Positions 4,008 through 62,992 of a DNA stretch of 64,000 nt are shown piece after piece. The stretch is from Anthoceros angustus (taxonomy: Eukaryota; Plantae; Anthocerotophyta). The first letter of the stretch is position 1, and each line of letters opens with the position of its first letter. The position numbers were made by a program, and so were the translations under genes. Under the pieces are notes generated by a model that saw nothing but the letters and a program-made list of their open reading frames with translations, did no database searches and was not told where the DNA came from. The stretch spans positions 1-64,000 of the forward strand of contig VJWM01000108.1 in NCBI GenBank assembly GCA_010909165.1, read 5' to 3'.

Positions 4008-4010
4008 TTT

Positions 4011-9430: not shown

Positions 9431-9432
9431 TA

Positions 9433-14645: not shown

Positions 14646-14689
14646 TGAAATTTCAAGAGAGTGACAAGAGCTTGAGGCAGCCCCAAATT

Positions 14690-17215: not shown

Positions 17216-17762
17216 GAACGCGGAGGTCCGTAGCCCAAGCATACCCGACGGTGACCCTCAACTGGCATATTGGATGTAAGTAAGAACGGTAGGCGAGACG
17301 AAGTAGGGGAGGGAGTAAGAGAAGGTTGGTAGGTTTCAGACGTAAACGGGTCCTTAAACGTTTGTCCATCCCGGGCCTGTACGGTGAACGAGTAGAGCAG
17401 TTAGAGGACGGAAAAGGAACGCGTTGCGGTAGGCGGCCTCAGGTAGGTCATCTTTCCTAATGACGGAGAGCGTGTTGAGTAACGGGCGTGTATAAAGGGA
17501 ACAAGTCATTCCCTTGGGAATGGACCCCATATTGCAACGACAAGAGATTGGTGCCTTGGTGTAGGCCCGAGCCGGTAGTGGTTGTAACACACCAAGGTTG
17601 GATGGTTTGGTCGAGAGGGAGCTATGGGCGCAGTTTGAGCCCGGGACATTTGAACACATGTGGGAAGCAACGCCTCCCTAATGGCGAGAAGTCGGCAGAG
17701 GAGAGTGCACACACACCTGCGGGTCCTCACAGTGCACACCTTGAAGATGTGCTGGGACTTGT

Positions 17763-18300
17763 GTGAAATTGCATGGGAGGGCCACGGTTTTGGCCGAGGC
17801 GAGACGGGTGTGTAGTGAGGATGCGACATGCCCTGGCAAAGTAGCTAGGGATGATATGTTTGGGAAGTTGACTGGCGGAGCAAGGCGTCTGTTTCAAAAA
17901 CGAGTCTCAGAGCTAGTGCACACACGTATGACTTTGCTGAAACCATGGTCGGAGCATTCACCGGAGCTGCGCACAGAACTCGTTGACATCATTCATGAGA
18001 GTTTTCCCGCAGTTACTAACCGAGATTTCATCAACAAGCAATTCTCCCAGCGGTCTCGGACCAAAAATTCATTGTGCCTAGCCAGGGTGAAGTTGGCTGC
18101 AGCGGATTTGCGGAGACGTGGTGATTACGAAAAACATTTGCGCCCAGGTAATGTGTCCAAAGAGGCGTGGGTGCGAAATGTTCTCAATTGTGTCGGTGCT
18201 TGATCGAACAGCGGTGAGTGGCCAAGGGCACAACAAATGAAGGCGGCGAGGCCGGGTGGCTAAGTATGAAGGTGCGGTGCAACCTATGGACGAGGGGCCA
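17763..18300 (+). pseudogene. CACTA TnpA-like (Transposase_24-type) relic
   Basis: KPWSEHSPELRTELVDIIHESF...RPGNVSKEAW...QMKAAR resembles the W..V....K..LW..I...F / P..V....W / S...K.NR pattern of En/Spm ORF2 proteins. Confidence 0.5.
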
Positions 18301-22850: not shown

Positions 22851-25800
22851 TCGCCCTCTTCCCCTGTAGCCACCACCAGCACCAGCACCAGTTCTTAATT
22901 GGGGTGGACCATCATGGTCATTATTACTAACATATGAAGCTGTCCTCCTGTCATGGCTTGAGCCAGGGGCTGGATGCCCAATCGAAACCTGAATCTTGCT
23001 CCCTTTGAAATCATAGCCTGCAGTGCAGGTAGAAAAAGTTGATGTCACGGATTAGGTCAGTCTATCCCAAACTATCCCTCACAGCATGCAAGAGAAGTAG
23101 CCTAGTAGACCAGACGACTTGGCATGAACATACCATTGTACCAATTCACTAGGCCTGGTGCAGCTCGGGGGTCATCAAGTACCACTTCGGCTTCCCTTAC
23201 ACCAGTTACTTTGTCCCTGTAAAGTCTCACCATTGGTGCACCCGTTTTGCTGTTCACCTGCCAAGAAGGAACAGTTGATATTACAACAGCCAATGGTAGC
23301 CGGCTCAAGGATAGGCCTGGCCTTCAACCTGACCCAGAGCAGAAGGATAGGGGCGAAACTTCAGAGGAAAAAAAAAGGAGACTTCCACAGTCTGCAACAT
23401 TTACCACCAGCTCACCTTGATGGCCCCCGTGTCATTCAGCAAGGCCACCAGACTCTCCTCATTCGCAACTTCCGGAAGATTTGAGATGAATAGGGTATCA
23501 GCTCCAGTGGGACCATTCACGCCTGAAACCATCAGGGAAACATGCTTGGCTTAGAAAAGTTTAAAAGGAAGGATGTCCCCCATAGCTTAGCAAAGTGTCC
23601 CACCACCAGTGTGCTACCGACACTACCAGAAATAGTGACATAATGGAACCTTGAACAATCTCGGAGCGAAATAATGTCGTCACCCATTGAAAGGTCCAGG
23701 AAGGGAGGGAGGAAGCAAGTGAGTCACACTGAACCGGAAGAGAGAAACTATTCTGCACGACTTGCGCAGACTGCAACAACCCTGTAACATATGAAGACTG
23801 GACGTGATGTGTAGCACTAGACACTTGGAACACACACTAATGTTCACACCACCTAGATCTGTGAATGTCTGTCCCTGAGAATGAAAGAGGAGATAACAAA
23901 CTAACCCACCTGAGCACTGTCATGACATAACCACTCAGCTCGTCGCAGGCCACAAAGCTATCCTGTGTCACCAGTTCTTCACCCCATTTCCTTTGTTTTA
24001 CTTTTAAGCAATTGCAAAATTTACCCCAAGTGTGCCTTCTCACACCCCCCTAGCGTGACCAGGATCCTATTGTCGGCCATGAACTTAGAATTTAACCAGT
24101 TTCCTTGGAATGAGTAAGATTGTCATGAATATCCACAGAAATCTTGCAACAGCCAGTTCCCTTCCTCCTACATGAACTGTCAAAGCCAAGCACAAGCCCC
24201 CATCCATTCCATTCCTTTCCTATCCCAGGGTTTTCACGTGACCACAAAATCCTTAAGAGGGGCCTAAAACCGTGTTGCATATCCAAGACTTGTACAAAGC
24301 AGCACAAAGTGATCCTGCATATTTCTACCCCCTAACACAAAGAAGCTCCACAGCTTCCCCATAAACCTTTTGGAACCTCTCCACTGTGCAATAACAAGCT
24401 GATGAGATGATTTCTCTTAAACCTTCCTCGTACGTTGCAAATTAACCCTTAAACGCAACGCCCCAGAAGACTTGAGGCTGGCAAAAGCAAAAGTAGAAGA
24501 AGGGTGCGTTGCATGGAAGAGACTGCAATGACTACACTGGATCCAGGCGGACAACCCTCTAACAACTGGCCACACACATTGCGGTGTGTTCACACAATTT
24601 CAAAAACCCCAGCCCCCGCTTGGCATTTAAAAGCTAAGGTAGAAAACCCCGTTTGGGCTGCTGCGGCAGCAGCAGCAGCATCATCACCATCACCACCACC
24701 ACCATCAACACAGCGACCGACCAGCAGCCTCTCCAAATTCCAGTCCAGTCTAGTTCCCAGTGACGGGCCTTTTCCGCCAGCGAAATGCCCCCACCACGCC
24801 CTACCAAGCATAGCATTCCTAACCCGTGCGGCCACCACAAAGCCCCACTGCCTCTTTCCGCGTATCGCAAGAAGAAGAACTAGCGAGCTCATCATACATA
24901 GATGCCATATATCTTGGTGCGGTTCCTGCAAAGGGTTAGCCAGCCCCTTCCAGATGCATGTCCCCCTAGTCTGCGGCGGCCGCCCAAAGGTGTGCAGCTG
25001 GGGCCACCAACACTTACCGGAAACAACAGGCGCAAAGTCAGATGGCCTGAACATACCCTTCACCATGATTCCTGGCAGCAGCAGCAGCAAGACGACGGCT
25101 TCAAGTGCCCACCGGGTGCTACTACCCTGGCACCAGGCACCGGGCACCGGCACTGGCAGAGGCGGCGCTGTGCCGTGCCGTGCCTCCGGAAACCAGCCAG
25201 GGGCAGGGGCGGTAGCACGAATGCGGAGGTGGGCAGGGTAGCAGCAGCAGCAGCGGCAAAGAAAGGAGGTTTCCGGCAAAGAAGGGAGCGGTGGCGGATG
25301 GATGAATGGTTGGCAAACCTGCTGCGTCGGAAAATCTGCTCTCGCGAGCGAGGTGGTGGTCCCGATCACCCCGGCCCCCCTCGGGGTGGTGCTGGTCATA
25401 AGCAGACGAGTCCTTGCGGAAGGAGGATGCGATGCTGCTCCCGATCTCGCCCCCGCCCGCTCCGGTCCCGGTCCCGGAACCGGGTTCTCCCGGGCCGGAC
25501 CCGGCCCCGGCCCCGGGCCCGGCCTCCGTTTCTCCCTCCGCTGCGGTTGCCGCCCCTGCGGCCGACCCCTGGATCACGGTGCTGCGCGGTCGCTGCCCGC
25601 CGTGCCCGTTCTGCTGCTGCTGTTGCTGATGCTGGACCTCATGCTGCTGCTGTTGCTGCTCATAGGGCTCCCCCCGGTCCCCGGTGCGGTCGCGGAGCTG
25701 CTCCCCGCGGTCGCGGCCTCCTCCTCCTCCTCCTCCACCCCGGTGCTGCTGCAAATCCCGATCTCGGTCCCGGTCCCGATCCCGGTCCCGGTCCCGTGCT

Positions 25801-25940
25801 GGCTCCCGATGCCACTCCCACTCCGATCCATCTCCCCTCACGCTCTGCTGCCGATGATCGCCTCCCCCACCTCCGCCACGATCGTAGGCGCTGTGGCCTG
25901 GAGGCGCATGCGCCCTTTCCTCGCCCTTCAAGCTCATCAT
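21937..25940 (-). CDS. FET-like RNA-binding protein (RD/G/Q-rich N-terminus, RRM, RGG, RanBP2 zinc finger, RD-rich tail), about 615 aa; exons 25319-25940, 23416-23522, 23134-23257, 22657-23017, 21937-22571
   Basis: GT-AG introns with matching phases; [58 protein letters not shown]. Exon 5 has indels that the duplicate copy does not share. Confidence 0.85.
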
Positions 25941-28446
25941 CCCCCGCCAGCCGAACGCGATCTCCCAGTCTGCTCGCCTCCTTGCCCTCTTCAGCACACG
26001 CCCGGTCTTCTTCGTCTAGCCATAACCCATATGATAGCTTTAGAATATTATAGTATCCGGTTTCGGTTTCGTGGTGTAGTTGGTTATCCCGGTTGAAGAA
26101 ATTCGTAATCTCGCACTACCTACTATGTATCTACACTCCCACCTATTCTCGGGCCTTTCCATACTTGGTTTTTACCTTCTATGTATGTGGAAGGTTTCGC
26201 CATGTATTTAAACCCAGGGTCCCGCGAATGATGACTTGTTGAGCTCGTTGAGCTCAGCGTACAACGACAGTTGAAGTGGTGGAGATATTTGATAATGAGC
26301 TGACGCTCGTTCGACCGGGTGCACAGCGGTGAAGATTGGTGGAGATGGTAGTCGCTCTGCTACCGGTTTCCGTTCCCTTGTGTTGTTTCTCATTCGATTC
26401 TTCGATAAAATGGCATATGGTGCCTTGCCCTCTCACAAGGGTTGCAAACGATCCTTCCGATGCCAGGCTAATATGTCGAAGCATATTTTTGGTGACATGT
26501 TCGTTCGGGGTCAGTCACAAGCCCCATGGTTTGTGTTGGACGTTTTGACGGAGGGGAAAGGCAAAGTCTTGGGCACGGGGACAAGCCCCATGACATAAGT
26601 ACCATAGGGAGAAAATAAGTGGACGATGGAAGTGAAGGAGGGTCACAATTGTCTCCACATTTCGTGGACGCCCATGCTGAGTGACTTGCTAGGTAGATGG
26701 AGGGGAGGAAGTTGTGTTTTTCGAGTCTTCGGATCCCATTATAACAAGGTAGGATCCCATTATAACAAGGTAGTTGCACCTAACAACTTATACTTCACAT
26801 TCTTGAGCATGCATTCTTCACATGGAAGCTTGTTAGTGCGCTGTAGTTTGCTTAGAGCTACGTTTGCAAATCTTGCAGCCGGCAAAGAGCATCACTTCAC
26901 ATTGACTGTGGTAGCCGATGAGTATGTAAAGAAACTGGACAAAACGTGGACGCCGTTGGGTTTAGCTTTGAAGGATCCTATACTATCTGATCTCGAGGTT
27001 GAGGACGAGAATTTGAAGTTTCTTCAACTCTTTTAATCCACTGCTGTGCAAACCTCCCATCCGCTGCTTCCTGTAATTTCCAACTATATTACAAAGAGAT
27101 CCTCAATCTCTCCCACTCACAAAAGCACTTTAGTGTTTTCAGGTATGCACAGGTATTTTTATTGCAATCTCTGCTTTCTTGATTTCATTTGTGAACGCAA
27201 TTGTGTGTTGAGCAAGTTCACTTGACAGGGAGGGAACGATGGAACAATCATACCCACCAAAGTGTCAAACTTTTCTGACATTCCAGCTAGTGGGAAGATG
27301 CTAGGCATGCATTTTACGTTTGGTTGTGAAAGTGTGCTATCGGATGATAGTTAATTTGTTTTTGAATTGCCAAGTGCTTCAGCAGTAGCTTATCTGCTTG
27401 TTGAATAAGGTTTTTTTGGACAATATCAATATGTGGGTAAGGTTGCCGATGGATTGGTGGAGACTGGGGCTTCCAGATTGAGTATCCCATCACGTGTGCA
27501 TCAATATCTTTTTGATGTTTGCATATATCAATATCTAATTTACCTAGGGCTAACTCAGCTTCAACCTCTTACTCCTTTTAGGATTACGATTACAATGCAG
27601 CAGCAATTGTTCAGTCCACAAGAGACTTTGGGAGCAGACTCTCACACCACATATGAACAAACTCACACGACATATGAACAGACTTTTTGAGATGAATATG
27701 ACACTCCCTCTCCAAACTCCGTCCCCTTCCTTATGTTGAAGGGTTGGAACTTCATGGTTCCACAATCCACAGGATGAGTTTGATGAATATCTAACCTGGA
27801 CCAGAAGTTAGAAATGGCCCTTTTCGACGTCCTGCATGGACATGTGATATTTCCTTGCACCTATTGTACTTTTCCAGGGCCCTTACAGCATACAACATCG
27901 AGTATCATCAAAGTCCAAAACAAACTTGTAGTCCCGTTAGCACAAAGTTGTGCCAGCCTACTTTGCTCTGATCCATGGACTGCACAGCCACATGAGCGCT
28001 TGGCAAAAAGGGAACGTTATTCATTCACATACCCTCCAGACCAGGTTTCCTTCTAAACCGGAGTTCCTCCAGGTTTGAGAACTCCAGAACATCTTGAGAC
28101 TCTGAACAAGGACAAGGTAGACGATACGATGCTGAGTGGGGCACTGAATCTGCTTGCCATTGCCGCCAACCGGGCCAAGTTCTTCTACAACAGTCTGGGA
28201 GGCTCACAAAAGGGAAAAAGGGGCCTCTTAAGCTTTCGTCCACCAGTTGCTCCCTACTTTCATGAACGTCAAGCTTCCCACAATTGCTTATAACCTGCAC
28301 GGCTACTGGGCCATGCTTGGATGCCTTAAATGTGTGTACGGAGAAACTTGCAAAGCTTTGCCAGCCCATTATCGATTCAGGCATGGGATTGGAAGATTGA
28401 GCGGCCATGGGAATTGGGACTGGCAGGTTGGAACCTGGCGTTCAGC

Positions 28447-29680: not shown

Positions 29681-30922
29681 ATGGAAGATGTGCGCCCGCA
29701 GCTGGTGGAGAGGGTGGTGCGCCCGGAGCTGATGGAGAGGGTGTTGCCGGAGGTGGTGGAAAGGATCTTGGCGTTCTTGCCTAGAGACGACACCATTCGG
29801 GCAGGATTGGTGTGTCACGAGTGGCACAATTTAGTCTCCTCTCCGTCCTTCGGTAAGCTCTGCGGCCGGACGTTATCAGCATGCGACAAGCTATGTTTTC
29901 CAGCCATGTTCTCGTATGGGTCAAAGCCGCCCGGCTTTGGCCTGGACATGGAGCAGCAGAAGCTGCAACCTTTGCCTTTTTCCTGTGTGGCCTGCTGTCT
30001 GGCGACTCACAAAGGATTGTTGCTCCTGCTTTCGTTCAGGCCCAGGAACAACTGGGAGTATTGGGTAGTCAATCCTGTGACGGGGGCTGTGAGAGGGTTG
30101 CCTTCTTTTCGGCCGCTGATCGAAGGTGACAAGCAGCTGGCTGGGTATCATACTTCCTTCATGTCTTGTGCAGTTCTGGAGGTTGATGAGGATTGGCAGT
30201 CGTACACCCTGTTTTGTGTGTACAAAAGAGAGGAGTACTCTGGATTGCAGGGGAGTCTTGCGGCGGGTCCTGCCAGGCTGCTCCGCTATCGATCAGGCAC
30301 TTCGGCTTGGACCCTGATATCGAGCCGGTGTCAGGAGGAGGCGGGGGATATAGATCTCACGCGGTGCAACTTATGTTGCAACTGCGTTTTTAGTGATGGC
30401 CAGGTTTTTGGCCTGGCTCGGGCCCTGGGTTATTTTTTGGTAAGCTTTGATGTTGAAGTCATGACTTGGAAATGTGTTTGCAAGCTTTAGAGGATTTCCA
30501 CGAACCGAAAGCGGTGGTGGTATGTAATGGTTGAGTCCCGGATATCACGGTTGCAATCTCGTATTGTCGTGAAGAGGTATGACCCTGCACAGAAGACGAT
30601 GGTGTTGGAGACGCAGCTCCCAATGATGTTCGGCCACAGCGCTTTGTTGGAGTGCTCCGCACGTGGACCTTTGCTGTACGTCATGGCTACCAACGACAGG
30701 CCTTCCTACAGGGCAGTTACCTACACGGATACCTACATGGCTATCTATAATGGCAGCACGTCGGAGTGACACAATTCCAGTAGGAACATTCGGTGTGGGC
30801 TTTGGACCGCTGTTCCCGGATATCAGCCTCCCCCCTTTACGTTTTTATATGGGGGATGCCGCGCTGGAGGCTACGTAATCCCTCGAGGTGTGTTCGAACT
30901 GGGTCTCAGCACTCCCGTTCAA
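29681..30922 (+). pseudogene. F-box protein paralogue 1 (intronless; frameshift near 30490, TGA at 30767)
   Basis: LPEVVERILAFLPRDDTIRAGLVCHEWHNLVSSPSF F-box; ATHKGLL, VVNPVTG..RGLP and C-terminal FELGLSTPV. Confidence 0.85.
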
Positions 30923-34630: not shown

Positions 34631-35960
34631 ATGGAAGATGTGCGCGCGGAGCTGGTGGAGAGGGTGGTGAGCCCGGAGCTGGTGGAGAGGGTGGGGCGCC
34701 CGGAGCTGGTGGAGAGGGTGGTGAGCCCGGAGCTTGTGGAGAGGGTGGTGCGCCCGGAGCTCGTGGAGAGGGTGGTGCGCCCGGAGCTGATGGAGATGGT
34801 GTTGCGCCCGGAGCTGGTGGAAAGGATCTTGGCGTTCTTGCCTAGAGACGACGCCATCCGGGCAGGATTGGTGTGTCACGAGTGGCACAATATAGTCTCC
34901 TCCCCGTCCTTCAGCAAGCTCTGCAGCCGGACGTTGTCAGCATGCCCGAAGGTATGCTTTCCGGCCACTTTCTCAGATAAGTCACGGCTGCCCGGCGTGG
35001 GCAAGGACATGGAACAGCACAAGTGGCATAAGCTGCCAACTTTGTATACTCGCTTTAGTTCCTGTGGCTTTCGTCTGGCGACTCACAAAGGATTGCTGTT
35101 CCGATCCTGCGTTGGGCCGTCAGGGGCAAGGTTCAGGACGAGTATTGGGTCACTAATCCTGTGACGGGGGCTCAGAGAGTGTTGCCTTCTTTGCTGCCGC
35201 TGATTAACGATGACAAGCAGCTGGTTGGGTATTATAGTTGCTACTTGGAGGATGTATTTCTGGAGGTTGATGAAGATGGGCAGTCGTACACCCTGATCGG
35301 TATGTTAAGACGACAGGCTAGATTGGGGAGTCTTGCGGCGGGTCCTGCCAGGATGGTCCGTTATCGATCAAGCTCTTCGTCTTGGACCCTGTTACCGAGC
35401 CGGTGTCAGGAGGCGGCGGGGGATATAGATCTCACGCTGTCCCGCTTATGTTTCAAATGCGTGTTTAGTGATGTGGGTTTTAGCCTGGCGCAAGTTTAGC
35501 CTGCAAATGCGTTATTTTTGGTAAGCTTTCATGTTGAAGCCATGACTTGGGAATGCCTTTGCGAGGTGGAGGCGAATTTCCATGCACCGAAAAGTTGGTG
35601 GCATGCAATTCTTGTATCATGGTTGTGGCTGAGGCCGTGCGCGTGTGCAACCTCTTATTGTCATAAAGTATGACCCTGCACAGAAGACGATGGTGTTGGA
35701 ACAACGCTTCCAACGATGCACGGGTATGTTGGTTTCCGTTGGTGCTCGGCACATGGACCTGTGCTCTGCATAATGGCTATGTATTTCTCGGATACCTACA
35801 TGGCTACCTACAATGCCAGTACCATGAAGTGGCACTCGCAGTGGCAAAAATCCAGGAGGGTGTGGAAGCGGGGCCTTGGACCCTGTTCCCTGCTTTCAGA
35901 CGTGCGTATGCTTACGTTCTTCCAGGTGCCTTCGAACTGGGTCTCAGCACTCCCGTTTAA
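34631..35960 (+). pseudogene. F-box protein paralogue 2 with expanded N-terminal repeat (frameshifted)
   Basis: Same F-box and downstream motifs as paralogue 1; ends AFELGLSTPV* at 35960. Confidence 0.85.
34649..34810 (+). repeat. In-frame 27-bp minisatellite x6 (ELVERVVRP)
   Basis: gagctggtggagagggtggtgcgcccg units counted directly. Confidence 0.95.
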
Positions 35961-37992: not shown

Positions 37993-38779
37993 ATAAAGAG
38001 CTGAAGAAGCTGGTGGAGGAGGGGAAGGTGAAGTACATAGGGCTGTCGGAGGCCTCAGCCGACACCATCCGGCGGGCGCATGCGGTGCACCCCATCACTG
38101 CCATACAGCTGGAGTGGTCTCTTTGGTCTCGGGATGTGGAGGAGGAGATCATTCCTCTCTGCGGGTATGATTTGGTGACCTTCACTCGGCTGCCCTTGTG
38201 TTTGTGACTTCCTCTACATCCCGACTCTCACGTAATTTTTTATCTGGCATGTGCAGAGAGCTCGGCATCGACATCGTGGTTTACAGTCCACTTGGCAGAG
38301 GCTTCTTCTCCGGGTTGAAGGCAGGCAGCCTCAGTGACTCCGATGTCCGCAAGGTTTGCGTGCTTCCAAAATGAATTGGGCTGTCTGCAGACCACGTTCC
38401 CCTCCTCTGTGCTCAATTTCAGTGTTTTGGTTGCCTTGTTGCAGACCCATCCTCGGTTTTCGGAGGAGAATTCCCAGCGCAACCAGGCCTTCTACAACGT
38501 TCTGGTGGAGATTGCCGACAGGAGGGGAAGACATCTGGCCAGCTGGCGCTTGCGTGGGTTCACCACAAGGGAGATGATGTGGTGCCCATTCCGGGAACAA
38601 CCAAGGTGCAAAATTTCGAGGAGAACGTTGGCGCGCTTGACATCAAGCTTTCCAAGGAGGAGATACAGGGAATTGAGCAAGCTGTTCCACACGAAGGCGT
38701 TCATGGAGATCGATATCATGACAAGAACTTCACCTTTCTGAACGCTACCACTCCTCCATTGTCAACGTGGAAATTGTAG
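37993..38779 (+). pseudogene. 5'-truncated aldo-keto reductase (auxin-induced PCNT115 / AKR13-like); exons 37993-38164, 38257-38353, 38445-38779
   Basis: [71 protein letters not shown]. No N-terminal exons found upstream. Confidence 0.88.
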
Positions 38780-39740
38780 TCGTGAACTGATCGCTAGCCC
38801 TGCAGAAAGCGTGCGTCCTGCACTGTAATCGCTCGCTAACACTGGGAGTCTGCGGTGCGTGCTGCTAAGCACTTCTGTATGTCCAAGCGGAAATTGCAAA
38901 TACAAATGCTCCCAAAAAGTTTAAACACTTGGTTCATGTATGCTGAAAGATGCAGCAAAGAACTCGCATTGTAAACAACACATAGCCTGGTTCGAAAAGT
39001 GGAATGCATTAGCTGTCCGCCACCTCCCACTGCATTCTAAGGTTGTAAAACTGCGGAGCAGGCATTCCTCTCCACGATTCCGACCCAAATTACATCGCCA
39101 GCTGCAAGTAGCCAAGCAAACCGTGCACCATTACCCATCAGACCAACGCCACCGCTTCCAAACGTTTGTCCAAGACCCAGGGCGTCCACCAGCTACAATG
39201 AATAAAAGGGATGCCGGTTCATAGTCCTATGCCCTTCCTTTCAAGACTTGAAAAAAAGATAACGAGGACCTCTGTGCGATCAACCCCCACGGCGGACACT
39301 CAACTACCAAACTGTGCCGGACAAAATGTATGCTGTAGGTGAGGGCATTTTTGTATGCGTAGGCATAAAGTTAAAAGAGAGAACCGACCAGTTTAGGATC
39401 AAGCTTGCCACGATTGATTTGGAAGCACCACAGATACTTGGATATGCTTGTGTGAACCCAATAACGGATGTTGTACTGCCTGCCCAGCCCACAGCCACAA
39501 TCAGTCCACGTCACTGCAACGAGTACTTCAAACCATAAGAAAAACTACAGGGTAGTCGGAACCTGCACCCGACATTCAAACAACTATGGCATCCACCCTA
39601 GCCAGATTGGCAGCGGAGAAACACCTGCAAGTCTCCCACCAGCCTCTCCTTCAGAGCTCTGGGGACTGTCCCCATCATCTTCTCCTGAACGTCGTCGACT
39701 ATTTGCTTCCTGCAAAAAGCCAACACAAGTGTTAGAGTGA

Positions 39741-40216
39741 TCCTGCCAGGATGGTCCGTTATCGATCAAGCTCTTCGTCTTGGACCCTGTTACCGAGCCG
39801 GTGTCAGGAGGCGGCCGGGGTATAGATCTCACGGTGTCCAACTTATGTTTCAAATGCGTGTCTAGTGATGGCCAGGTTTTTAGCCTGTCGCAAGTTTGGG
39901 GCCTGCAAATGCGTTATTTTTTGGTAAGCTTTTATGTTGAAGCCATGACTTGGGAATGCCTTTGCGAGGTGGAGGCGAATTTCCATGCACCGAAAAGGTT
40001 GGTGGCATGCAATTCTTGTATCATGGTTGTGGCTGAGGCCGTGCACGGTATGCAGCCAAGAGTCTCATTGTCGTAAAGAGGTATGACCCTGCACAGAAGA
40101 CGGTGTTGGAGACAACGCTTCCAACGATGCAGGGGTATGTTGGTTTGCGTTGGTGGTCGGCACATGGACCTGTGCTCTGGATAATGGCTATGTATTTCTC
40201 GGATACCTACATGGCT
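39741..40216 (+). pseudogene. F-box paralogue 3, internal/C-terminal fragment only
   Basis: Highly similar to 35342-35810; both ends cut abruptly. Confidence 0.85.
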
Positions 40217-40294
40217 TCTTCCACTCTGAAGGTCTCCGGTTCGAATCCGGGCGCAGCCAAGTTGTTGAAGGCATGGAAAGTTTTTTTTTCTTTA
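40217..40294 (+). mobile_element. tRNA-derived (SINE-like) 3' half with B box and T-tract
   Basis: T-arm tccgg-TTCGAAT-ccggg (B box GGTTCGAATCC at 40238-40248), acceptor-like gcgcagcca, then a T run; no A box or 5' half. Confidence 0.5.
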
Positions 40295-40477
40295 CTCGGA
40301 AAGTGGTTCAGCGCACCAACCCGGTCGACGGCAACAAGTTTTTGTCCCTTATTGCTCGGAAAGTGGTTCAGCGAATTAACCCGGCTCTGCAGGTCAGATA
40401 ACCTACTCGGAACTTGGCACCTATGAAAATGGGCACAGCGTCGTTTATTCTGCCTCTTGTGCCACGGGAATTACAAA

Positions 40478-40900
40478 ATGGCAAGATTTATTGGAGAGCA
40501 GATTTTTTATATTTCGATCAGCAGCTTATTTGTGTTATGCATTATAGACCTAAGTATGTGGCCAGGTGTTATAGCATTAACATGTGCTTCAAAAACAAAG
40601 TTAGAAGATGGTTCTTCGGATTCTTCTTTCAATCTATTAGATTATACGGATCGACCACCAATTCCTCCTTGTCCATGTAAGAAAGTGGAGGATACTAGAG
40701 TAGCTGTATGTCCTCCTCAAAATGTTTTAGTATGTGATTGTTATAAGATAATACGAATTGGAGCTCGATATCCACCTTACTGTCAAAATGTTTTGAATGG
40801 AAATCCTAAATGTCTTCAACGGATATTTATAGTGGGTCCTCCAGAACCTCTATGTAGTTGTCCTAGTCAGTGTAATATATGTCCATCTGCGATACCTTAG
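40478..40900 (+). CDS. Putative secreted cysteine-rich peptide, 140 aa
   Basis: ATG in acaaaATGG context; hydrophobic N-terminus (IFYISISSLFVLCII...GVIA); 12 Cys in the predicted mature part; no stop over 423 nt of AT-rich DNA. Confidence 0.7.
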   Translation: MARFIGEQIFYISISSLFVLCIIDLSMWPGVIALTCASKTKLEDGSSDSSFNLLDYTDRPPIPPCPCKKVEDTRVAVCPPQNVLVCDCYKIIRIGARYPPYCQNVLNGNPKCLQRIFIVGPPEPLCSCPSQCNICPSAIP

Positions 40901-41419
40901 TGTATAGCATAAGATTTTGCTTCTAATGTTGCTTTGTTCATATTTGTTTTAGTTTTGTTGTGTTCACTTATCATTTTTAATCTCAATAAATATTAGGTAC
41001 TTTGATCCGTTTGTAAAGGGAATATCTAGTATTTGAGCATATTAGTCATTGGTTTCATGTTTTTTTACAGCTTTAGTAGATTGGATGCTAAATGTTTCTT
41101 TGAAATTAGATTTATTTAATTCAAAGGAATATTTCTTACCTTAAGATGAAATAATGTATGATTAGGTTTGTACTATCATGGTGAGTAAGAAATGATGATG
41201 ATATAGACCGATGAATATATCTAATCATATCATTGAGGTTATCTAACTTACTCACACCTTGTCCTTTGCGCACCATGTTAACCTATGATGCTTGCTTTGA
41301 ACTCAAAGAGAAGTAGGGGAAGAAAACTCTTCTTATACCTCCAACCATAATGTAACAGTAATGTCATTGTAGTCTATAAGTACGACAGAGTTCCAAACCA
41401 GATTTGTTCCAGTTCTAGT

Positions 41420-41565
41420 TGTAATACACTTAACATATGTGTTAAGGTTTTCAATTATATTACAAGGACGCAATCATATATCCATAACTCATATGTAATA
41501 CACTTAACATATACATTAAGGTTTTCCATTATATTACAAAGAAACAATCATATGTCCATAACTCG
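41420..41565. repeat. Imperfect 2x about 76-bp tandem repeat
   Basis: gtaatacacttaacatat..ttaaggtttt..attatattacaa..caatcatat.tccataactc twice. Confidence 0.75.
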
Positions 41566-42012
41566 CATACTGCAATGTGGCACATTCATACATGCTCTAG
41601 TTTATCCTATTATGTGCAATGCAATATCCACTATCAATCGTTTTGCAAACCTTTAATATCCACCACCAACTTTCTAGGGAAATTTGGCCTATTTATTTGT
41701 GTAAATTATGCACAAATTATCGTGAGGTTGAAAAAAAAGGTACCTAAAGATGTTCTTAAAGTATACTATGTGATTAATCTATATATTCTTTGTGTTGTCA
41801 AGATGCACAAATGAAAAGATCCTAATATTGAAAAAAATACTTCTAGATTATCTACTTTCATAGGTGATTAATATTTTTAACTTTTAAGTACTAAGATCAT
41901 CAAGGCTACCTTTTCCTACCTCCTTGAGATTTTATTTCTATCTGTATATTATGATTAATTTTATTTGTTTATTTAATAAGATAATATTTGGACTGATACA
42001 ATTAGTCGGTTT

Positions 42013-42227
42013 TTTAGCTTCTCTTGGCTCCACTTAGGCTGGGGGAAGGAGGGAAGAGGGAGTTTGTGGTTTGATAAAAGTGGGCATTTAGCTTCTCTTG
42101 ACTCCACTTAGGCTGGGGGAAGGAGAGAAGAGGGAGTTTGTGATTTGATAAAAGTGGGCATTTAGCTTCTCTTGGCTCCACTTAGGCTGGGGGAAGGAGG
42201 GAAGAGGGAGTTTGTGATTTGATAAAA
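42013..42227. repeat. 74-bp minisatellite, about 2.9 copies, G-rich
   Basis: Units start at 42013, 42087 and 42161. Confidence 0.95.
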
Positions 42228-42877
42228 TGTGCTCACTTGCACCCAACTATATGATAGTTTGTGTATAAGATAATTCTCTTGACTTCTCAGCTTTTCAAAA
42301 AACACATCTTGTAATAGATACGATTATCCATCTTTTTAAAATTGAAAAGATGATTTTTCTGGACGAGATATAACTTACAGCTTGAACTACCTACCACAGT
42401 GCTATCATTATGAATACACTTGCACCTCCACATACGCTTGCACACTTGCCGTAGGAATAACTGCATTGCAGGGTCAATCACACACTTCACGTGGGACGTG
42501 TGTGGCAAGCCACTCGTTCTGGCCAGGGGCAACTTCTCTCACCACGTACATTGTTTCGATTCATCAGCATGTAACAGACAAATAATTGGGACGTGAGGCC
42601 CTGCTGGAAGCCCAGATTTCTATTACTAGCTCAGAGAGCATAAACAGGGCTGCCTAATACAGTAGGGTGCAACAAAGGGACGTATAAATTACAAACGGAT
42701 CCTGGAGCCTCAGGGTTGCAACCAGAGGCAGGCGGGAGGGGCAGGAAGGACAGCAGATAAAACACATGAAGATGGCAACCAAAACGCACCTTCTCCTTGC
42801 AAACGAAGTGCGGATTATGATGCAACAGCCACAGTTGTACAGGACATCCTAAATGTACATCCCTAATTATCTTCTGC

Positions 42878-44538
42878 CTAAGTTCTCTGCCTCACCCTGC
42901 GACCGTTTGCATCTGTGCCATCTGACACCAAACACACACTCCTCCTACTTCCGTCTTCATCGACTCCAGCAACTGTTCTTAGAAGCTCCGATTGTAGCGA
43001 GGGACAGCTCTCACGCAAATACTCAAACCCTTCAGAGTGCATAACCTCTGCAACAAGGAATAAAAGCATACACGAATAAGTAAAAAAGGATGCGAACAAA
43101 CGGACAACTCAGAGTCATGCCGGACATTAAGGACCCGGACCAGTAACGGAAGGGGACATAAGGGCATCGCAGCCAACCTGCAAGATGTTGTGCGGCAAAT
43201 TTGAGACATACTGCCTTCAACTGGGAGGCATGGTGTTGTTCAGCGAGGGCCAACGTTGTGGCCACTGTATCAGTGCTAACGTCCTCACACAACTTGGACT
43301 CACACAGCAGCCGCAGCCGATCTAAACCATATCTGTCTGCTGCAGCTAGCAAATGCTGAGCCATCAGGGTGGATGCCGCTGAAGAGCAGCAACCAGTCAT
43401 ATCATTGGTGTCGGGAAAGGCATCCCTGTATATAAAATTCAGCAGTGCCTACACACAAAGTGAAACCAAGTGCAATGCATCACGGAACTTGAAAAAGCAA
43501 AACATTCAAGAGGCCAGCCACATTAAACCGTAAACATAGTGGCCACGTTATAAAACCTGGAAGATAACTGGGGACAATGCTGCAATGAGTCAGGGAGCGC
43601 ACCTTAAACACAGGTGCCCGCATCTCTTCGATGTGCAACTTGCCACAGTTGCGATCCCTAAGAGGACCGTACAACTGCGCTTTGAACACGGGAGAACGAG
43701 CGGCAAGCACAAGCTTGTGCGCATGGAATGTTTCGCCATCCACTTCAAATGTAACATCCGTACCCTCACCGCTCTCAAGCAAGTCACCAAAGTGCTTTCC
43801 CAAATCCGGCTCTGGCACAGGAATATTGTTCAGCTTGGGACCTTGCGTGGACGAGACAACCACACCAACTGTGCAAGTGATGGCAAGGCTGTCATTCTTC
43901 AGGAAGTCTGACAGTTCTAGGACTGCTCGCCTGAAAAAGCGCTTGTAACCCCTGCATCCTCTCTCGACATCAGAACACATACATCCACACATTCGGGCCT
44001 CCAGACCTAGCCAATTCCAGCAACCCTAAGACGGTAGATCTCTGGAAAGCGGCAAGCGAGCAACCAAATCAACTTACCACATGCTGCCGCGATATTTGAG
44101 AGTATAAGGGCCGCTCTCTAGCGACCTCGCGAAGTGGCTGTGCACCTTGTGCTTGCCCTTGCCACTCTGATCCAGCAGAGTGAGCTCGAACAGCGCCCTC
44201 ACGTCCGTGCCCTCGCTGGCTAGGGCGATGAACACGGAGACGTAGAGAGAATTGTCCTCCGCGTTCTTGCCGTCGGGATAGAAGTAGATGGCCCACTGGT
44301 AGCCACCAACGCTAAAGCTCTCGCTAGCAATGTACTTCCCCACCCCCATGCCCTTGGCCAGCGAGTACCCTTGGATAATGAAGTGGTGCGAGCCGTTCTT
44401 GGTCTCGGTGACGGAGCAGGAGCGGGTGGGAATGGAGCCGAGCACACCGGAGGCCGCGGCCGCTGACGACGAGGCGGCTCCCGCTGGCGCCACGGTGCTA
44501 GGCTTCACATCCTGCAGCGCCATGGGCGCTCGAGCCAT
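42878..44538 (-). CDS. BPM: BTB/POZ-MATH domain protein (CUL3 substrate adaptor), 416 aa; exons 44078-44538, 43603-43951, 43178-43448, 42878-43047
   Basis: MATH ([43 protein letters not shown]), BTB ([25 protein letters not shown]), BACK ([13 protein letters not shown]); splice phases are consistent and the frame is intact. Confidence 0.95.
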
Positions 44539-46188
44539 GCACCGGCCGCACTCGCGTCCGGGGTACAGCACAAGGACGGGACGCGGCCAGTAGAAGAGCA
44601 GAGTGCGTGGTTGCGAGGTGAGCCGCTGGCAGACGAGGGCGTGGAGGCTGGCAGCTCTCCAAGGCCTCCATAAAACAAACGTCCGCTACGATAGCTTGCT
44701 GCGGCTTTATGCTCGGCCGACCCGGTCCGGTCCCCACTCTCATCACGAGGCCTCTCTCATCACAGGGTTACCGAGACGAGGGTGACCAAGGGGCTCCCCA
44801 AACGGACTCGGTTCACTTTTTGATTTTTTTTTGTAAGGTGCAACAATACATATGAAGTTCACGTTTAAATTTTATTGCTATCCTCTCGCGCTGAAAATTC
44901 AGATGATCTCTTCCGTTCACTTTCTTCTTTTTTTTTTGTATGGTGTTACAATACATCCCCACGTATCACGAGATTTTATTGAGGTAAAAAACGATGGGAA
45001 AAGCCCATCTAGGAGGGGACAACCAAAGGGGACCAGGGGGTCGAGGTGAAGAGGAGCAACTAAGCTCCCTACCTAAAGTCACCTACCTATCTCGTGCATG
45101 TACTGTACCTAGCTCCCTACCTAAAGTCACCTACCTAAACCCACGTATCTAGTTCAAGTTTGATTGGTATTGTTAACTTACTTCTCTCAATAAAGGTATG
45201 GCGTGCCTTGGGCGATGAACACGGAGACGTAGAGAATTGTCCTCCGCGTTCTTGCCGTCGGGATAGAAGTAGATGGCCCACTGGTAGCCACCAACGCTAA
45301 AAGCTCTCGCTAGCAATGTACTTCCCACCCCATGCCCTTGGCCAGCGAGTACCCTTGGATAATGAAGTGGTGCGAGCCGTTCTTGGTCTCGGTGACGGAG
45401 CAGGAGCGGGTGGGAATGGAGCCGAGCACACCGGAGGCCGCGGCCGCTGACGACGAGGCGGCTCCCGCTGGCGCCACGGTGCTAGGCTTCACATCCTGCA
45501 GCGCCATGGGCGCTCGAGCCATGCACCGGCCGCACTCGCGTCCGGGGTACAGCACAAGGACGGGACGCGGCCAGTAGAAGAGCAGAGTGCGTGGTTGCGA
45601 GGTGAGCCGCTGGCAGACGAGGGCGTGGAGGCTGGCAGCTCCAAGGCCTCCATAAAACAAACGTCCGCTACGATAGCTTGCTGCGGCTTTATGCTCAGCC
45701 GACCCGGTCCGGTCCCCACCTCATCACGAGGCCTCTCTCATCACAGGGTTACCGAGACGAGGGTGACCAAGGGGCTCCCAAACGGACTCAGTTCACTTTT
45801 TGATTTTTTTGTAAGGTGCAACAATACATATGAAGTTCACGTTTAAATTTTATTGCTATCCTCTCGCGCTGAAAATTCAGATGATCTCTTCCGTTCACTT
45901 TCTTCTTTTTTTTTTGTATGGTGTTACAATACATCCCCACGTATCACGAGATTTTATTGAGGTAAAAAACGATGGGAAAAGCCCATCTAGGAGGGGACAA
46001 CCAAAGGGGACCAGGGGGTCGAGGTGAAGAGGAGCAACTAAGCTCCCTACCTAAAGTCACCTACCTATCTCGTGCATGTCACCTAGCTCCCTACCTAAAG
46101 TCACCTACCTAAACCCACGTATCTAGTTCAAGTTTGATTGGTATTGTTAACTTACTTCTCTCAATAAAGGTATGGCGTCTGCTTGGGC
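44223..46188. repeat. Tandem duplication, about 0.98 kb unit (BPM promoter plus 5' part of exon 1)
   Basis: 44223-45209 versus 45210-46188; GGGC at all three junction positions. Confidence 0.95.
44970..45024 (-). mobile_element. Short 3'-end remnant of the CRE-like family (duplicated near 45950-46005)
   Basis: Minus strand ggttgtcccct..tagatgggcttttcccatc..tttt..aataaaatctc resembles the family 3' end. Confidence 0.45.
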
Positions 46189-47649: not shown

Positions 47650-49418
47650 TGTGTTGAGAGAACTTGGACAAATGTTGGGATCAGTCTGGGCTACCTTTGC
47701 ATTCGGTAAACATCGACAATCCATGTTGCCCTGGATTACAAGTCCTTGGCCTCGTTGAAGGGCAACATTTGTCAGCGTCGTACTCTCCATAGAGAACACG
47801 TAGCTTTCGCCGACAATGAGTTTTTTATTATCCCTTATTTCAATGCGGGTTTGGATTTTTAGGTCTGAGTTAAGATAGTTTTAATCCCGATCAGCTGTGA
47901 TTCTACAAAATGTTGTCTTGGATTACTTTACAAGTTATAGGCCCGTAGGCGACTTGCTGCCATTACCGCCGTGTTGCCCGCTGATCTAATAAGCCGCCCG
48001 CTCCTTTTTGTTGTTCGCGATTGATTTCTATAACGGCAGCTTACCCTATTTGTTTATGTACTTAAATCACGCCTTATACTGTCACACATACCCCTCATGT
48101 GACATCCATGTTGAATGTGCTTTAGACAAATCCACATGACACACACTCACATCGTTTGAGGTGGCCACACATATGTTGTGGTGGCGACATCATATGTATC
48201 AAGTAACGGGCATGAGATCCGCTATAGCTTGTAGCTTTGACCTGGTTGTATAGCTATGATCTGCTATCATTGAGTGTCATTTTATAGACTGTGCGGAAGG
48301 AAGACTTTCTTCCGGTGTCTTTCTCTTCGTCTAATAAGGAAACCTATCTCAAGTTCCACTCTTTGTAATCCCTTTACAGTTTCTTGTTATAAATATTAAT
48401 CTAATATTTTTTCGCAAATTTTAGGGTTTAGGGTTGTGATATTTGAGTAGAAGAGTGTGGTTCACAAGTAGTAATTGTAAGACCTAGGTACTTTGCCCTT
48501 GGATGGTAGCGCCATCCAGTCATGTGAAGACTCGTTTATTTGTCAGAACCACAAGTCTATGAGCATAAGGGTTATTGTGTCTTGCAAGCAGTTGGCACTG
48601 AACATGTGCCACAGGTAAAGGTAGGCCTACACTCTTAAAATGCTGTAAATAACCTGTGTTGAATAGATTATCCTATTTGCTATTAAATATTGATCAATTA
48701 TTTTGAATATGTTGCATGTAATTAAGAGCTCGAAAACGACCTTGTCTAGAGAAAGTAGTTAAAGTATCGAGGGTAAAATTAGATGCTGAGGAGGTTCGGT
48801 ACCAAGCCTGAAAATGTGTAACACAGCTTCTGGCTTCTAGTAGGATCTTAGCAAACTTTGAATCAAGGTCTTGTTTTGCAACAAGATCTAATTTTTTAGC
48901 TGGTTATTTCAGCTTTGTTCTTGTATATAGACAGCTCTGAAGATGTGTTCTTTTTATACCTGTTTACTTCCAAGGGATTTTTGGAGAATTAACGTTTTTT
49001 AAAAATTAACACTATTGCTATGTTTCAAAGTCTCATCCCGATACTTTGTCTTCTTAATTTGCAAGTCAATGAACCTAAGTGGGGGAGGGGTTCATTTTCT
49101 ATGTAGTTGATTAAATTATCATCTATGATGGTTGGATGGATGCTTTATAGTTTAGGATTTGTGTTGATATTTAAGTATGATTATGCTATGCAATTTCAAT
49201 ATTTTTCTATTCATTGTTCCACAATTTTGTTTATGATATTATCATTTGGTTTTGCAGATCTATCGGGATTTCAATTTGGCATTCTGCGGATTCGTTGGAT
49301 TTTCACCTCACTGTTCGTTAGCAAGGCCCTGCTCAGTTCGCTCCCGCTCCTTTTGTTTATGAGGAATGAAGATTGTGGTAGTTGTTGCATGGTGCTGTAG
49401 GTGCCTAGGAAGGGGGAA

Positions 49419-59035: not shown

Positions 59036-59575
59036 CAGTCCACCCCCCCTAATTGGGACTGGTTCGGAGTGCCTTTAGAGGTCCCATTAAGGGAAGTGTC
59101 CCGATTGTATTTTCCCTATTTAAAAATAATAAAAATGTTATAAACTTAAAAAAAATCAAAAAATACCCAAAAAAAGAAAATTTAAATTTGGATTGATAGG
59201 TTTCACTAAAAATAACTTTTAACAATTCTTTATATAGTTGTTTGAAAGCTAGCACTCTCTCTAAGCAGCATCAAAAAACCTCTATCTATCATAAAGGAAA
59301 AAGCTTAGCTTAAGAGTCTTCAATCACACCTAAAAGTCTATTGTGCTCTCAAATAATAGATTCTTTTTTTTTCTTTTTTTAAATTTTTTTAGTAAAAAAA
59401 TTAGAAATCCCATTTAGGGAGGTGAAACTAACATGAATGTATGTTTCAAAAGGTCCCAATTATCATTTAGGGAAAAGTCCCATTTATTACATTGTAAACT
59501 AAAGGGAGTAGGATGGGAGGTCCCATTTAGAGAGGAATCCCATTTATAGAATTCCCAATTAGGGGGGGCCGACTG
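59036..59575. mobile_element. Non-autonomous Tc1/mariner-type (pogo-like) element, 540 bp
   Basis: TA flanks at 59034-35 and 59576-77; 23-bp TIRs CAGTCCACCCCCCCTAATTGGGA and CAGTCGGCCCCCCCTAATTGGGA; internal TCCCATT repeats. Confidence 0.85.
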
Positions 59576-60337
59576 TATATCGTTAGGGCCTACACGTTTG
59601 GACAAACGTGAGTTATGATTTTCCTTTTATCGAAATGTTTGAAAGTGGACTATCACTAACCCGAAGACCATTTTGCCCGAGGCTCGCGTTCTCGCGTCCG
59701 AGAACAAGATTCGACCAGCCCGCGATTGTTACCACCGCAACGTTGCCCTTTGACTCTTGTTGGACCATTACACCAACAATAATTGTGCTATGTACAATTA
59801 AGGTAGAAGAATCACTATGGGATAGAAAAATATATTGGTGAACGATAAAAGAAAAAAGACAAGAAAGTAGTGATAAAAAAAGATAATACAAAATAAAGGG
59901 ATGACGAAGAATCAGTCGAATAATATTTAAATAATTAGATAGAAAGAAATATTAAGAATAATTAATTTATTTCTATCAAAAATATTATTTGATATGTAAC
60001 ATGAAACAACCTTTAAAAATAGTAAGTCCTTATATTGCCGTATAGTGATGTAAGATCCTCATTGATATAGGATCCTCTTCACATAATAATTCTTGTCTTG
60101 AATTTGGGTGAGAAAAAGCTCTAATACCTATCAGTTGGGCAAAGCCTCAAGACAACATATGTGCATACGTATATGGCAGTCAGGAATGATATCTACATAT
60201 GTAAGTCTTTTCATTCTCTCCAACTATGCCAACATTTGTGGCGTGTGCATAGGTCCTTTCAATTTTTCCAAACAATATGTACTGCTAATTCGTCTTCTTG
60301 ATTATTCTTGGATTCCTTCCAAGCAATTAACGATATA

Positions 60338-61357
60338 CAGTTAGCCCTCCTTAATTGGAAAACCTATAGATGAGATCCCTCCCTTCGGATCTCGCTCCCC
60401 TTGAAAGTATGGAGGGATAAAAGGAAAAATTCCCTAAATGACAAATTGAACATACTAGGTTCAGACATTCAAAGTAATTGTACCTTCTTAATTGGGATTT
60501 CTCATTTTTTATTTTAAAATTTCTAAAATACAAAAATCCTTATTGATGTAAGCACATCATGATCCAAATAGGTTCATAATGGCTGGAGGTTCAATAGATT
60601 TCTAAGTGCAGTTGAAGACTCCTAAGCATAGCTTTTTCCTTTATGATAGACCAGTAAAGATTTTTTTTTATGCCGCTTAGAAGGAGTGTTGGCTCTTAAG
60701 CAGTTAGGTAGAAAAATAGTAAGGAACGTGGAGACTTTATGTAAGGAAAAGAGGTGGGAAATCCCATCTACCCTGAGACGAAGGGGACAACCCTCAGGAG
60801 GGCACTAGGCCAAGAGAGACTAGCCCCATGATCGTCCATCTTGAAACTACCTATTGCTCCGAGAATGTCATGGTTCGGGGTCTATCTACCACCGGTGCCG
60901 ACGATGCTGCATCTCCTAGGCTTGTTGCCGTCCTGTACACTACGTTGGCCAATGCCCTCTGCAGGGCCGTCGACATCCATTGCCTGAAGAAAGCCACTGA
61001 ACAAGAAAGGGAGAGACCAACCCCATTCTTCGGACTCTGGTATTCCTTGGCACAAGCCTTGATGAACTTGGAGAAATCCTTGCCCATGGCCCCGTGAGCC
61101 TCGATGGCAAGGGGGATGAACGCGTGGCCACCCTGAAAAGTAATAGGTACTAGTGAGTTGGTTTTAGTGAAACCCATTGATTGAAATCTAAATTTTTCTA
61201 TCTTTTAGATTTTTAGATTTTATTATTTATTTTAAATTGGAAAAATGCAATTGGGATACCTCCGACCTCTAAAGTCGCTTCCATATGGAAGCAGCTTTCG
61301 AGGTCTAAGTCCCTAATTGGGACTACATGCATGTAGTCCCAATGAGGGAGGGCTGAG
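60338..61357. mobile_element. Related Tc1/mariner-type element carrying a CRE-like fragment (copy A)
   Basis: TA + CAGTTAGCCCTCCTTAATTGGAA left TIR; degraded right TIR TCCCAATGAGGGAGGGCTGAG + TA. Confidence 0.6.
60730..61135 (-). mobile_element. CRE-like non-LTR retrotransposon 3' end (RLE C-terminus), copy A
   Basis: FIPLAIEAHGAMGKDFSKFI...WMSTALQRALA is the typical post-endonuclease F.P...E..G / W...LQR..A signature of CRE-clade elements. Confidence 0.7.
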
Positions 61358-62004
61358 TAGCGACAAAGCGTCAGTGGCAACTAGCTCATAAGCGTCATCC
61401 CTTCGACATTTGGGAGCTGCTCCCGGTTGGCCACCACAGAACTGTGCTATGTACAATTAAGGTAGAAGAATCACTATGGGATAGAAAAATATATTGGTGA
61501 ACGATAAAAGAAAAAAGACAAGAAAGTAGTGATAAAAAAAGATAATACAAAATAAAGGGATGACAGAACCGAATCAGTCGAATAATATTTAAATAATTAG
61601 ATAGAGAAATATTAAGAATAATTAATTTATTTCTATCAAAAATATTATTTGATATGTAACATGAGCAACCTTTAAAAATAGTAAGTCCTTATATTGCCAG
61701 TATAGTGATGTAAGATCCTCATTGATATAGGATCCTCTTCCACATAATAATTCTTGTCTTCGGAATTTGGAGCTGATCAGAAAAAGCTCTAATACCTATC
61801 AGTTGGGCAAAGCCTCAAGACAACATATGTGCATACGTATATGGCAGTCAGGAATGATATCTACATATGTAAGTCTTTTCATTCTCTCCAACTATGCCAA
61901 CATTTGTGGCGTGTGCATAGGTCCTTTCAATTTTTCCAAACAATATGCATGACTAATTGTCTTCTTGATTATTCTTGGATTCCTTCCAAGCAATTAACGA
62001 TATA

Positions 62005-62992
62005 CAGTTAGCCCTCCTTAATTGGAAAACCTATAGATGAGATCCCTCCCTTCGGATCTCGCTCCCCTTGAAAGTATGGAGGGATAAAAGGAAAAATTCC
62101 CTAAATGACAAATTGAACATACTAGGTTCAGACATTCAAAGTAATTGTACCTTCTTAATTGGGATTTCTCATTTTTATTTTAAAATTTCTAAAATACAAA
62201 ATCCTTATTGATGTCATAGCACATCCAAATAGGTTCATAATGGCTGGAGGTTCAATAGATTTCTAAGTGCAGTTGAAGACTCCTAAGCATAGCTTTTTCC
62301 TTTATGATAGACCAGTAAAGATTTTTTTTTATGCCGCTTAGAAGGAGTGTTGGCTCTTAAGCAGTTAGGTAGAAAAATAGTAAGGAACGTGGAGACTTTA
62401 TGTAAGGAAAAGAGGTGGGAAATCCCATCTACCCTGAGACGAAGGGGACAACCCTCAGGAGGGCACTAGGCCAAGAGAGACTAGCCCCATGATCGTCCAT
62501 CTTGAAACTACCTATTGCTCGAATGTCATGGTTCGGGTCTACTCTGCCGGTCAAGCGATCTTGCATCTCCACAGGCTTGTTGCCGTCACCTCGTTGGCCA
62601 ATGCCCTGCGGGGCCGTCGACATCCATTGCAAGAAAGCCTTGAACAAGAAAGGAGAGACCAACCCCATTCTTCGGACTCTGGTATTCCTTGGCACAAGCC
62701 TTGATGAACTTGGAGAAATCCTTGCCCATGGCCCGTGAGCCTCGATGGCAAGGATGAGCAGCGTGGCCACCCTGAAAAGTAATAGGTACTAGTGAGTTGG
62801 TTTTAGTGAAACCCATTGATTGAAATCTAAATTTTTCTATCTTTTAGATTTTTAGATTTTATTATTTATTTTAAATTGGAAAAATGCAATTGGGATACCT
62901 CAGGCCTCTAAAGTCGGCTTCCATATGGAGGCGACTGAGGTCTGTCTCTAATTGGGACTACATGCATGTAGTCCCAATGAGGGAGGGCTGAG
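62005..62992. mobile_element. Copy B of the Tc1/mariner-type element with CRE-like fragment (62389-62774)
   Basis: Same TIRs and insert as copy A, within the tandem duplication. Confidence 0.6.

Follow-up and report, generated by a model that had tools for sequence, protein, structure and literature searches.

The sequence at positions 40478-40900 (+ strand) of a 64,000-nucleotide stretch of the hornwort Anthoceros angustus (contig VJWM01000108.1; the whole stretch is referred to here as the window) is an open reading frame (ORF) of 140 codons followed by TAG. On balance, our analysis favours the view that it is a genuine, intact and intronless gene encoding a secretory precursor with an 11-cysteine, proline-rich core, which would act as a defence- or ligand-type mini-protein. 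The encoded protein has a new cysteine framework and is an orphan, lineage-specific representative of a familiar kind of gene. Evidence for this was drawn from base composition, from comparison with a single distant homologue (here called P0001), from family and structure searches and from the architecture of the locus. The parts of the gene, with the evidence used to delimit each, are as follows.

40478..40900, + strand: coding sequence of the cysteine-rich precursor, intronless, 140 codons and TAG (ORF, GC content of the three codon positions, stops in the other frames, homologue P0001)
40478..40588, + strand: putative long signal peptide, residues 1-37 (hydropathy, -3/-1 heuristic, AlphaFold helix, alignment with P0001)
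40589..40651, + strand: acidic, Ser-rich and poorly conserved spacer, possible propeptide, residues 38-58 (sequence; few identities in the alignment)
40652..40897, + strand: core, residues 59-140, 82 residues with 16 Pro, 11 Cys and a net charge of +5 (composition and alignment, 11/11 Cys)
40985..40990, + strand: AATAAA, possible polyadenylation signal 85 nt past the stop codon, a hexamer that is frequent by chance in AT-rich DNA (sequence reading)

An earlier annotation made without any searches, the sequence-only reading, had described an intronless ORF of 140 residues with a good start context, and both the ORF listing and our reading of the sequence agree with it: the start codon sits in acaaaATGG and the frame is intact, with no defects in it. 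The GC content of the first, second and third codon positions is 0.44, 0.46 and 0.19, respectively, and the drop from the first two positions to the third is the periodicity expected of a coding sequence under AT-biased mutation combined with selection at the protein level. The window contains 213 ATG-ORFs of at least 60 residues, and no other among them has a third-position GC content (GC3) below 0.30. The A/T-rich third positions that had been set against GC3-rich F-box and BPM genes were likewise recovered, as the BPM exons at 43032-44568 (- strand) and the F-box exon at 34631-35161 range from 0.49 to 0.81. Every cysteine codon is TGT except that of C21 (TGC), in keeping with the earlier remark on the codons of the mature protein. 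Each of the other five frames contains 8-11 stops across the 423 nt of the ORF. Based on the strong codon periodicity, these stops and the existence of a homologue, the ORF is a genuine coding sequence.

The homologue was obtained with HMMER from a library of 1.84 billion protein representatives, in which P0001 (139 residues) was the sole match, with an E-value of 6.9e-6 for the whole library and 31% identity. The alignment spans query residues 16-138 with 43 identities over 122 aligned residues, and all 11 core cysteines are aligned at an overall identity of 31-35%. By our own arithmetic, the chance of finding 11 of 11 identical cysteines at about 35% overall identity is approximately 1 in 100,000. 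The two proteins share the same order of parts (hydrophobic signal, variable spacer, PPxPxCPC motif and core) as well as the motifs PPxPxCPC, CPx5VxVCDC, KC and LCxCPxxCxxCP, with slight differences in the length of three loops (x11, x10 and x17 in P0001 versus x13, x9 and x13 in the window protein). The sequence-only reading had made its proposal dependent on a homologue with conserved cysteine spacing, and P0001 keeps the whole framework while the rest of the sequence diverges, as is generally the case for secreted cysteine-rich peptides (CRPs). A rough Nei-Gojobori comparison, which is not precise, gave a dN of 0.66 and a saturated dS of about 1.5, and the ratio is consistent with purifying selection across the divergence.

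P0001 is a singleton cluster originating from one 1549-bp contig (locus L001) in the Logan assembly of run SRR33208241. This contig is AT-rich throughout, with a GC content of 0.36 overall and 0.31-0.41 per 200-bp window. The P0001 gene is also intronless, has a GC3 of 0.21 and is preceded by at least 768 nt of AT-rich DNA. A blastn comparison of L001 with the window revealed no DNA similarity beyond the coding sequence. Judging from the alignment, the window protein belongs to a real, very sparse and undescribed family in which P0001 is the one other known member; with two members, support for the family is thin.

A chance ORF in AT-rich intergenic DNA, with no gene present, would agree with the exact-protein look-up, in which neither the protein starting at M1 nor that starting at M27 had a matching record among called genes, leaving the ORF without an annotation or expression record, and with the low protein language model recognition score returned by the ESM Atlas. 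Stop codons are, however, common in AT-rich DNA, and an ATG-ORF of at least 140 residues was produced in only 5 of 2000 shuffles of the surrounding AT-rich block. The strength of the third-position periodicity and, above all, a full-length homologue with the E-value given above and every core cysteine aligned also argue against it. We attach almost no probability to this explanation, which the P0001 match has already effectively refuted.

Searches for further relatives were carried out at several levels. Neither the whole protein nor its core alone, and neither P0001 nor the P0001 core, matched a Pfam family at E ≤ 10, while sequence and profile searches of the PDB returned noise only, and the ESM Atlas gave no usable match with both proteins as queries. 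In a word-indexed search of 5.8 billion clusters, neither the full protein nor the core alone retrieved anything, and a profile built from the two sequences retrieved P0001 only. Back-translated pattern scans of viral contigs, of JGI metagenome contigs and of GTDB (one genome per prokaryotic species) yielded no confirmed relative, and tblastn of the protein against the window identified no paralogue. The literature search produced nothing specific on hornwort cysteine-rich peptides or on giant-virus insertions in hornworts. As no match was found in Pfam, the PDB, the ESM Atlas or the viral, metagenome and prokaryote sets, a new small family is supported at the sequence level. Two statements of the sequence-only reading are thereby strengthened: that the protein fits no described CRP family, given the empty Pfam result and the PDB noise, and that it represents a new one, given the P0001 match together with the absence of relatives in Pfam, the PDB and the ESM Atlas.

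The 140-residue protein contains 13 cysteines, namely C21 within the hydrophobic N-terminal stretch, C36 near a possible cleavage site and a further 11 in the core, where they fall within the C-terminal 76 residues. The core spacing, C-x-C-x10-C-x7-C-x-C-x13-C-x9-C-x13-C-x-C-x3-C-x2-C, is exactly that given in the earlier reading, and the acidic, Ser-rich spacer described there is present as well, at residues 38-58. The core is 20% proline and 13% cysteine and carries a net charge of +5 in the window protein compared to +1 in P0001. It has no CC dipeptide, contains CxC three times and ends in C-x-C-x3-C-x2-C. N-x-S/T sequons, a C-terminal hydrophobic tail, a membrane anchor and a retention signal were looked for in the 140-residue protein and none was seen.

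The claim of 12 cysteines, an even number, did not hold. This count needs cleavage before C36, which stays in the mature protein if the signal is removed after A33, but cleavage after A37 fits equally well. Since P0001 has no cysteine at the place equivalent to C36, the conserved number is, by this alignment, 11 and therefore odd. An odd number of conserved cysteines is unusual for a fully disulfide-bonded peptide, and it would imply one free thiol or an intermolecular bond, with metal binding as a less likely alternative. The proposed internal triplication also failed: the best self-alignment of the core scored 36 compared to 30.8 ± 5.3 for shuffled cores, and the idea was rejected as the observed score was reached by 55 of 300 shuffles (67 of 300 for P0001). 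A 12-nt exact repeat coding QNVL occurs at 40717 and 40783, is of borderline significance and is not kept in P0001.

At the N-terminus, R3 lies in the n-region and is followed by a hydrophobic core at approximately residues 9-27 (mean Kyte-Doolittle hydropathy of 2.1 over 19 residues), a stretch compatible with the signal-peptide-like N-terminus noted earlier and predicted by AlphaFold to form a helix at residues 2-27 with a pLDDT of 84-86. The -3/-1 rule, applied as a heuristic, is satisfied after both A33 and A37. At 33-37 residues, the resulting signal region is of unusual length, and it includes an acidic residue, Asp24. In P0001, the signal is cleaner and more typical (22 residues) and aligns with the N-terminus of the window protein, such that both proteins have a hydrophobic N-terminus with a -3/-1-compatible site. 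The signal peptide of the window protein is considered probable on these predictions. For the protein as a whole, AlphaFold reached a pLDDT of 41.6 when given the single sequence and of 47.6 when given the two-sequence alignment, values too low for a fold to be assigned. The weak model is beta-rich at low confidence, and a Foldseek search of the PDB with the better of the two models gave no match, a result that carries no weight at a pLDDT of 47.6.

The possibility of a strongly diverged member of a described family, such as Bowman-Birk, GASA/snakin, the LTP-like proteins with an eight-cysteine motif or STIG1, draws on the C-x7-C-x-C at residues 78-88, which equals the Bowman-Birk loop spacing, and on the CxC motifs, which are found in several of these families. 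The likeness to Bowman-Birk inhibitors extends to a nine-residue loop from cysteine to cysteine followed by x-C, proline within the loop and a small domain that is here putatively secreted and held by many disulfides. The reactive loop of these inhibitors follows the pattern C-T-P1-S-x-P-P-x-C, and the double-headed domain has 14 cysteines forming seven disulfides. The corresponding loops (CPPQNVLVC for the window protein, CPAMKVPVC for P0001) lack the Thr-P1-Ser-x-Pro-Pro sequence in that there is no Thr at P2, no Ser at P1' and no Pro-Pro at P3'-P4'. The earlier observation that the spacing is shared and the loop sequence absent is thus valid for both proteins. There are also 11 cysteines instead of 14, and no second matching loop. 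Hence, Bowman-Birk identity (PF00228) was rejected, as the loop pattern, the cysteine count and the Pfam model all fail.

GASA/snakin proteins (PF02704) have a C-terminal 12-cysteine domain with CC pairs, and membership was rejected because there is neither a Pfam match nor a CC dipeptide. The eight-cysteine-motif proteins (nsLTPs, 2S albumins and hybrid proline-rich proteins) follow C...C...CC...CxC...C...C and were rejected on the absence of the CC pair and of a Pfam match. With the CC pair that both of these groups require absent, the Bowman-Birk loop sequence missing and the Pfam and PDB searches empty or at noise level for both proteins, descent from a described family is, in our estimate, very improbable.

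A similarly small probability is given to a metallothionein-like metal binder, in which cysteine clusters of the CxC, CxxC and CxxxC types would coordinate Zn, Cu or Cd instead of forming disulfides. The three CxC motifs, the C-terminal C-x-C-x3-C-x2-C and the odd conserved count of 11 would suit such a protein. However, the hydrophobic N-terminal signal of both members points to the secretory pathway, an oxidising environment, none of the metallothionein families in Pfam matches, and the cysteines are spread across 70 residues with hydrophobic stretches between them that are beta-like in the low-confidence model. Plant metallothioneins are cytosolic proteins with terminal cysteine clusters and no signal peptide; membership in this group was rejected on the hydrophobic, signal-like N-terminus of both proteins and the missing Pfam match.

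The closest general likeness is to the secreted CRPs of plants (defensin-like, GASA/snakin, EPF, LTP-like and EC1, among others). As in these, the precursor is small and intronless and is built from a probable N-terminal signal, a spacer that varies and a cysteine-rich domain at the C-terminus, only the cysteine framework is kept between distant members, and few lineages are involved. The window protein differs from them in its new cysteine pattern (11 conserved, three CxC, no CC), and in a core that is 20% proline, and neither sequence nor profile searches matched it to a described family.

The features of the surrounding locus are listed below.

39741..40216, + strand: third, cut-off copy of the F-box array unit and left neighbour (92% to 35343-35805 and 74% to 30268-30689)
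40423..40431, + strand: two out-of-frame upstream ATGs, at 40423 and 40429, with the overlapping open reading frame 40414-40680 (sequence, ORF listing)
40469..42017, no strand assigned: AT-rich block, GC 0.29-0.36, comprising the coding sequence and 1.1 kb of non-coding DNA (change-point analysis, composition, dinucleotides)
41420..41564, no strand assigned: tandem repeat, 74 bp x 2, lying within the block (repeat search)
42013..42234, no strand assigned: purine-rich tandem repeat, 74 bp x 2.9, at the right edge of the block (repeat search, change-point analysis)

Change-point analysis placed the left boundary of the AT-rich block at 40469 (support 40444-40502) and the right boundary at 42017 (41987-42037), so that the ORF lies at the left end of the block and its ATG within about 10 nt of the edge. 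The coding sequence has a GC content of 0.36 and the following 1.1 kb one of 0.29, compared to approximately 0.49-0.50 in either flank. The observed/expected ratio (o/e) is 0.45 for CpG in the block compared to 0.70-0.80 in the flanks, and 0.98 for TpA compared to 0.64-0.77. No convincing ORF was listed in the remainder of the block, and the two 74-bp tandem repeats are unrelated to each other. On the left, homology to the F-box array unit ends at about 40218 in the alignment and is followed by approximately 250 nt of unique, GC-normal DNA; the right neighbour is a BPM (MATH-BTB) gene with exons at 43032-44568 (- strand). Rfam produced only a sub-threshold chance match across 38000-43500, and ARAGORN found no tRNA.

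As the block starts about 10 nt from the ATG, the window copy is without the AT-rich upstream DNA that is present beside the P0001 gene. No TATA-like box was seen in the 150 nt upstream of the ATG. The out-of-frame ATGs lie 55 and 49 nt upstream of the start codon and would hinder translation if the transcript begins upstream of them. Because of these three features of the sequence, expression of the window copy is in real doubt.

Several other features of the window were recorded. The units at 30268-30689, 35343-35805 and 39741-40216, spaced about 5 kb apart, constitute a repeat present three times beside the F-box ORFs 29681-30490 and 34631-35164, and look like a tandem F-box gene array with its last unit cut off. 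Where the array homology stops (about 40218), a stretch begins that resembles the 3' half of a tRNA gene (40222-40289, + strand), with a T-arm GGTTCGAATCC and then an acceptor strand ending in GCAGCCA, followed by a run of nine Ts at 40281-40289 that is like a Pol III terminator. We take this stretch to resemble tRNA-Val; neither ARAGORN nor Rfam reported anything there. Shortly before the ORF, at 40278-40417, the motif CTCGGAAAGTGG occurs together with its flanks three times, 51-60 nt apart. Further to the right, 44217-46188 is a tandem duplication of about 990 bp (44217-45213 and 45204-46188, 97.6-98% identity) that overlaps the MATH-domain exon of the BPM gene (44074-44568). Positions 1-18000 show a strongly positive GC skew over long stretches (0.2-0.37 per 1-kb window, at a GC content of 0.52-0.60); the ORFs tested in this region had no Pfam match, and the skew could reflect a strand-biased repeat or a purine-rich array. 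A 1.5-kb stretch at 24500-26100 has a GC content of 0.68 and long overlapping ORFs on both strands of up to 383 residues, the longest of which had no Pfam match and no exact-protein record. The AT-rich patches at 59051-62400 and 48251-49350 (GC 0.30-0.36, CpG o/e 0.18-0.58) contain no low-GC3 ORF and have no similarity to the block at 40469-42017 by blastn.

The main competing explanation is that the copy in the window is silent and either arrived recently or was rearranged: a 1.5-kb AT-rich piece bearing the coding sequence and its 3' flank without a promoter would have inserted, or remained behind, where the F-box array ends. We regard this as possible though rather doubtful. On this view, the piece would have come by transposition, capture or horizontal transfer from an AT-rich genome or genome compartment, and the ORF would be idle in its host and intact only through the recency of the event. 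The position of the composition boundary, about 10 nt from the ATG where P0001 has its long AT-rich upstream region, is what such a history would leave, and so are the GC3 of 0.19, unique among the 213 ATG-ORFs, the CpG and TpA ratios of the block compared to its flanks, the out-of-frame upstream ATGs and the absence of the protein from called-gene records. The cut-off array unit followed by an apparent tRNA 3'-half fragment also indicates that rearrangement occurred at the left side.

However, the block edges lack the marks of an insertion (terminal inverted repeats, a target-site duplication and a poly(A) tail), blastn detected no second copy of the block in the window, the scans of viral, metagenomic and prokaryotic sequences yielded no confirmed relative, and the ORF is without any defect. 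AT-rich patches of 400-1650 bp that are similar in GC content (0.30-0.38) and in CpG depletion make up approximately 11% of the window; AT-rich intergenic DNA is an ordinary component of the A. angustus genome, and the block therefore need not be foreign. A mobilised or foreign origin, as suggested in the sequence-only reading, is thus possible but not required. Among specific routes of arrival, a transposon-like insertion was rejected as the block edges lack terminal repeats and a target-site duplication, and a retrocopy was rejected as there is no poly(A) run near the AATAAA. An improbable further reading is that the gene is a founder of the undescribed 11-cysteine, proline-rich family that either entered the plant by horizontal transfer, with an AT-rich eukaryote as donor, or spread outwards from it. 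It seems just as improbable that the protein, under such a transfer, would be used at the plant surface in defence or in dealings with symbionts, with its odd cysteine serving covalent dimerisation or attachment.

Under the favoured reading of an intact gene for a secreted mini-protein, the precursor would be imported into the ER during its synthesis by means of the N-terminal hydrophobic signal, which may be cleaved near residues 33-37. Oxidative folding would then produce a compact, probably beta-rich domain held by five disulfides, leaving one cysteine free or in an intermolecular bond. Because no retention, membrane-anchor or N-glycosylation motif is present, the product would be expected to follow default secretion to the apoplast or cell wall. 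By analogy to other plant cysteine-rich peptides, our best guess is that the window copy, being cationic with a core charge of +5, might work there as a defence-type or ligand-type mini-protein. The sequence-only reading had put forward defence, protease inhibition and gamete or symbiont signalling as candidate functions. Non-seed plants have many lineage-specific secreted cysteine-rich peptides, few of which have a known role.

On present evidence, the gene adds modestly to a familiar class and does not represent a new type of system. Its interest lies in a new cysteine framework that combines an odd conserved number with a very high proline content, and in which the single distant relative marks the residues that are constrained. 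With its AT-rich codons amid GC-rich genes, it also offers a small case in which the arrival or persistence of such genes can be studied. If it is expressed, the protein is small and would be easy to synthesise or express for tests of antimicrobial activity, protease inhibition and receptor binding.
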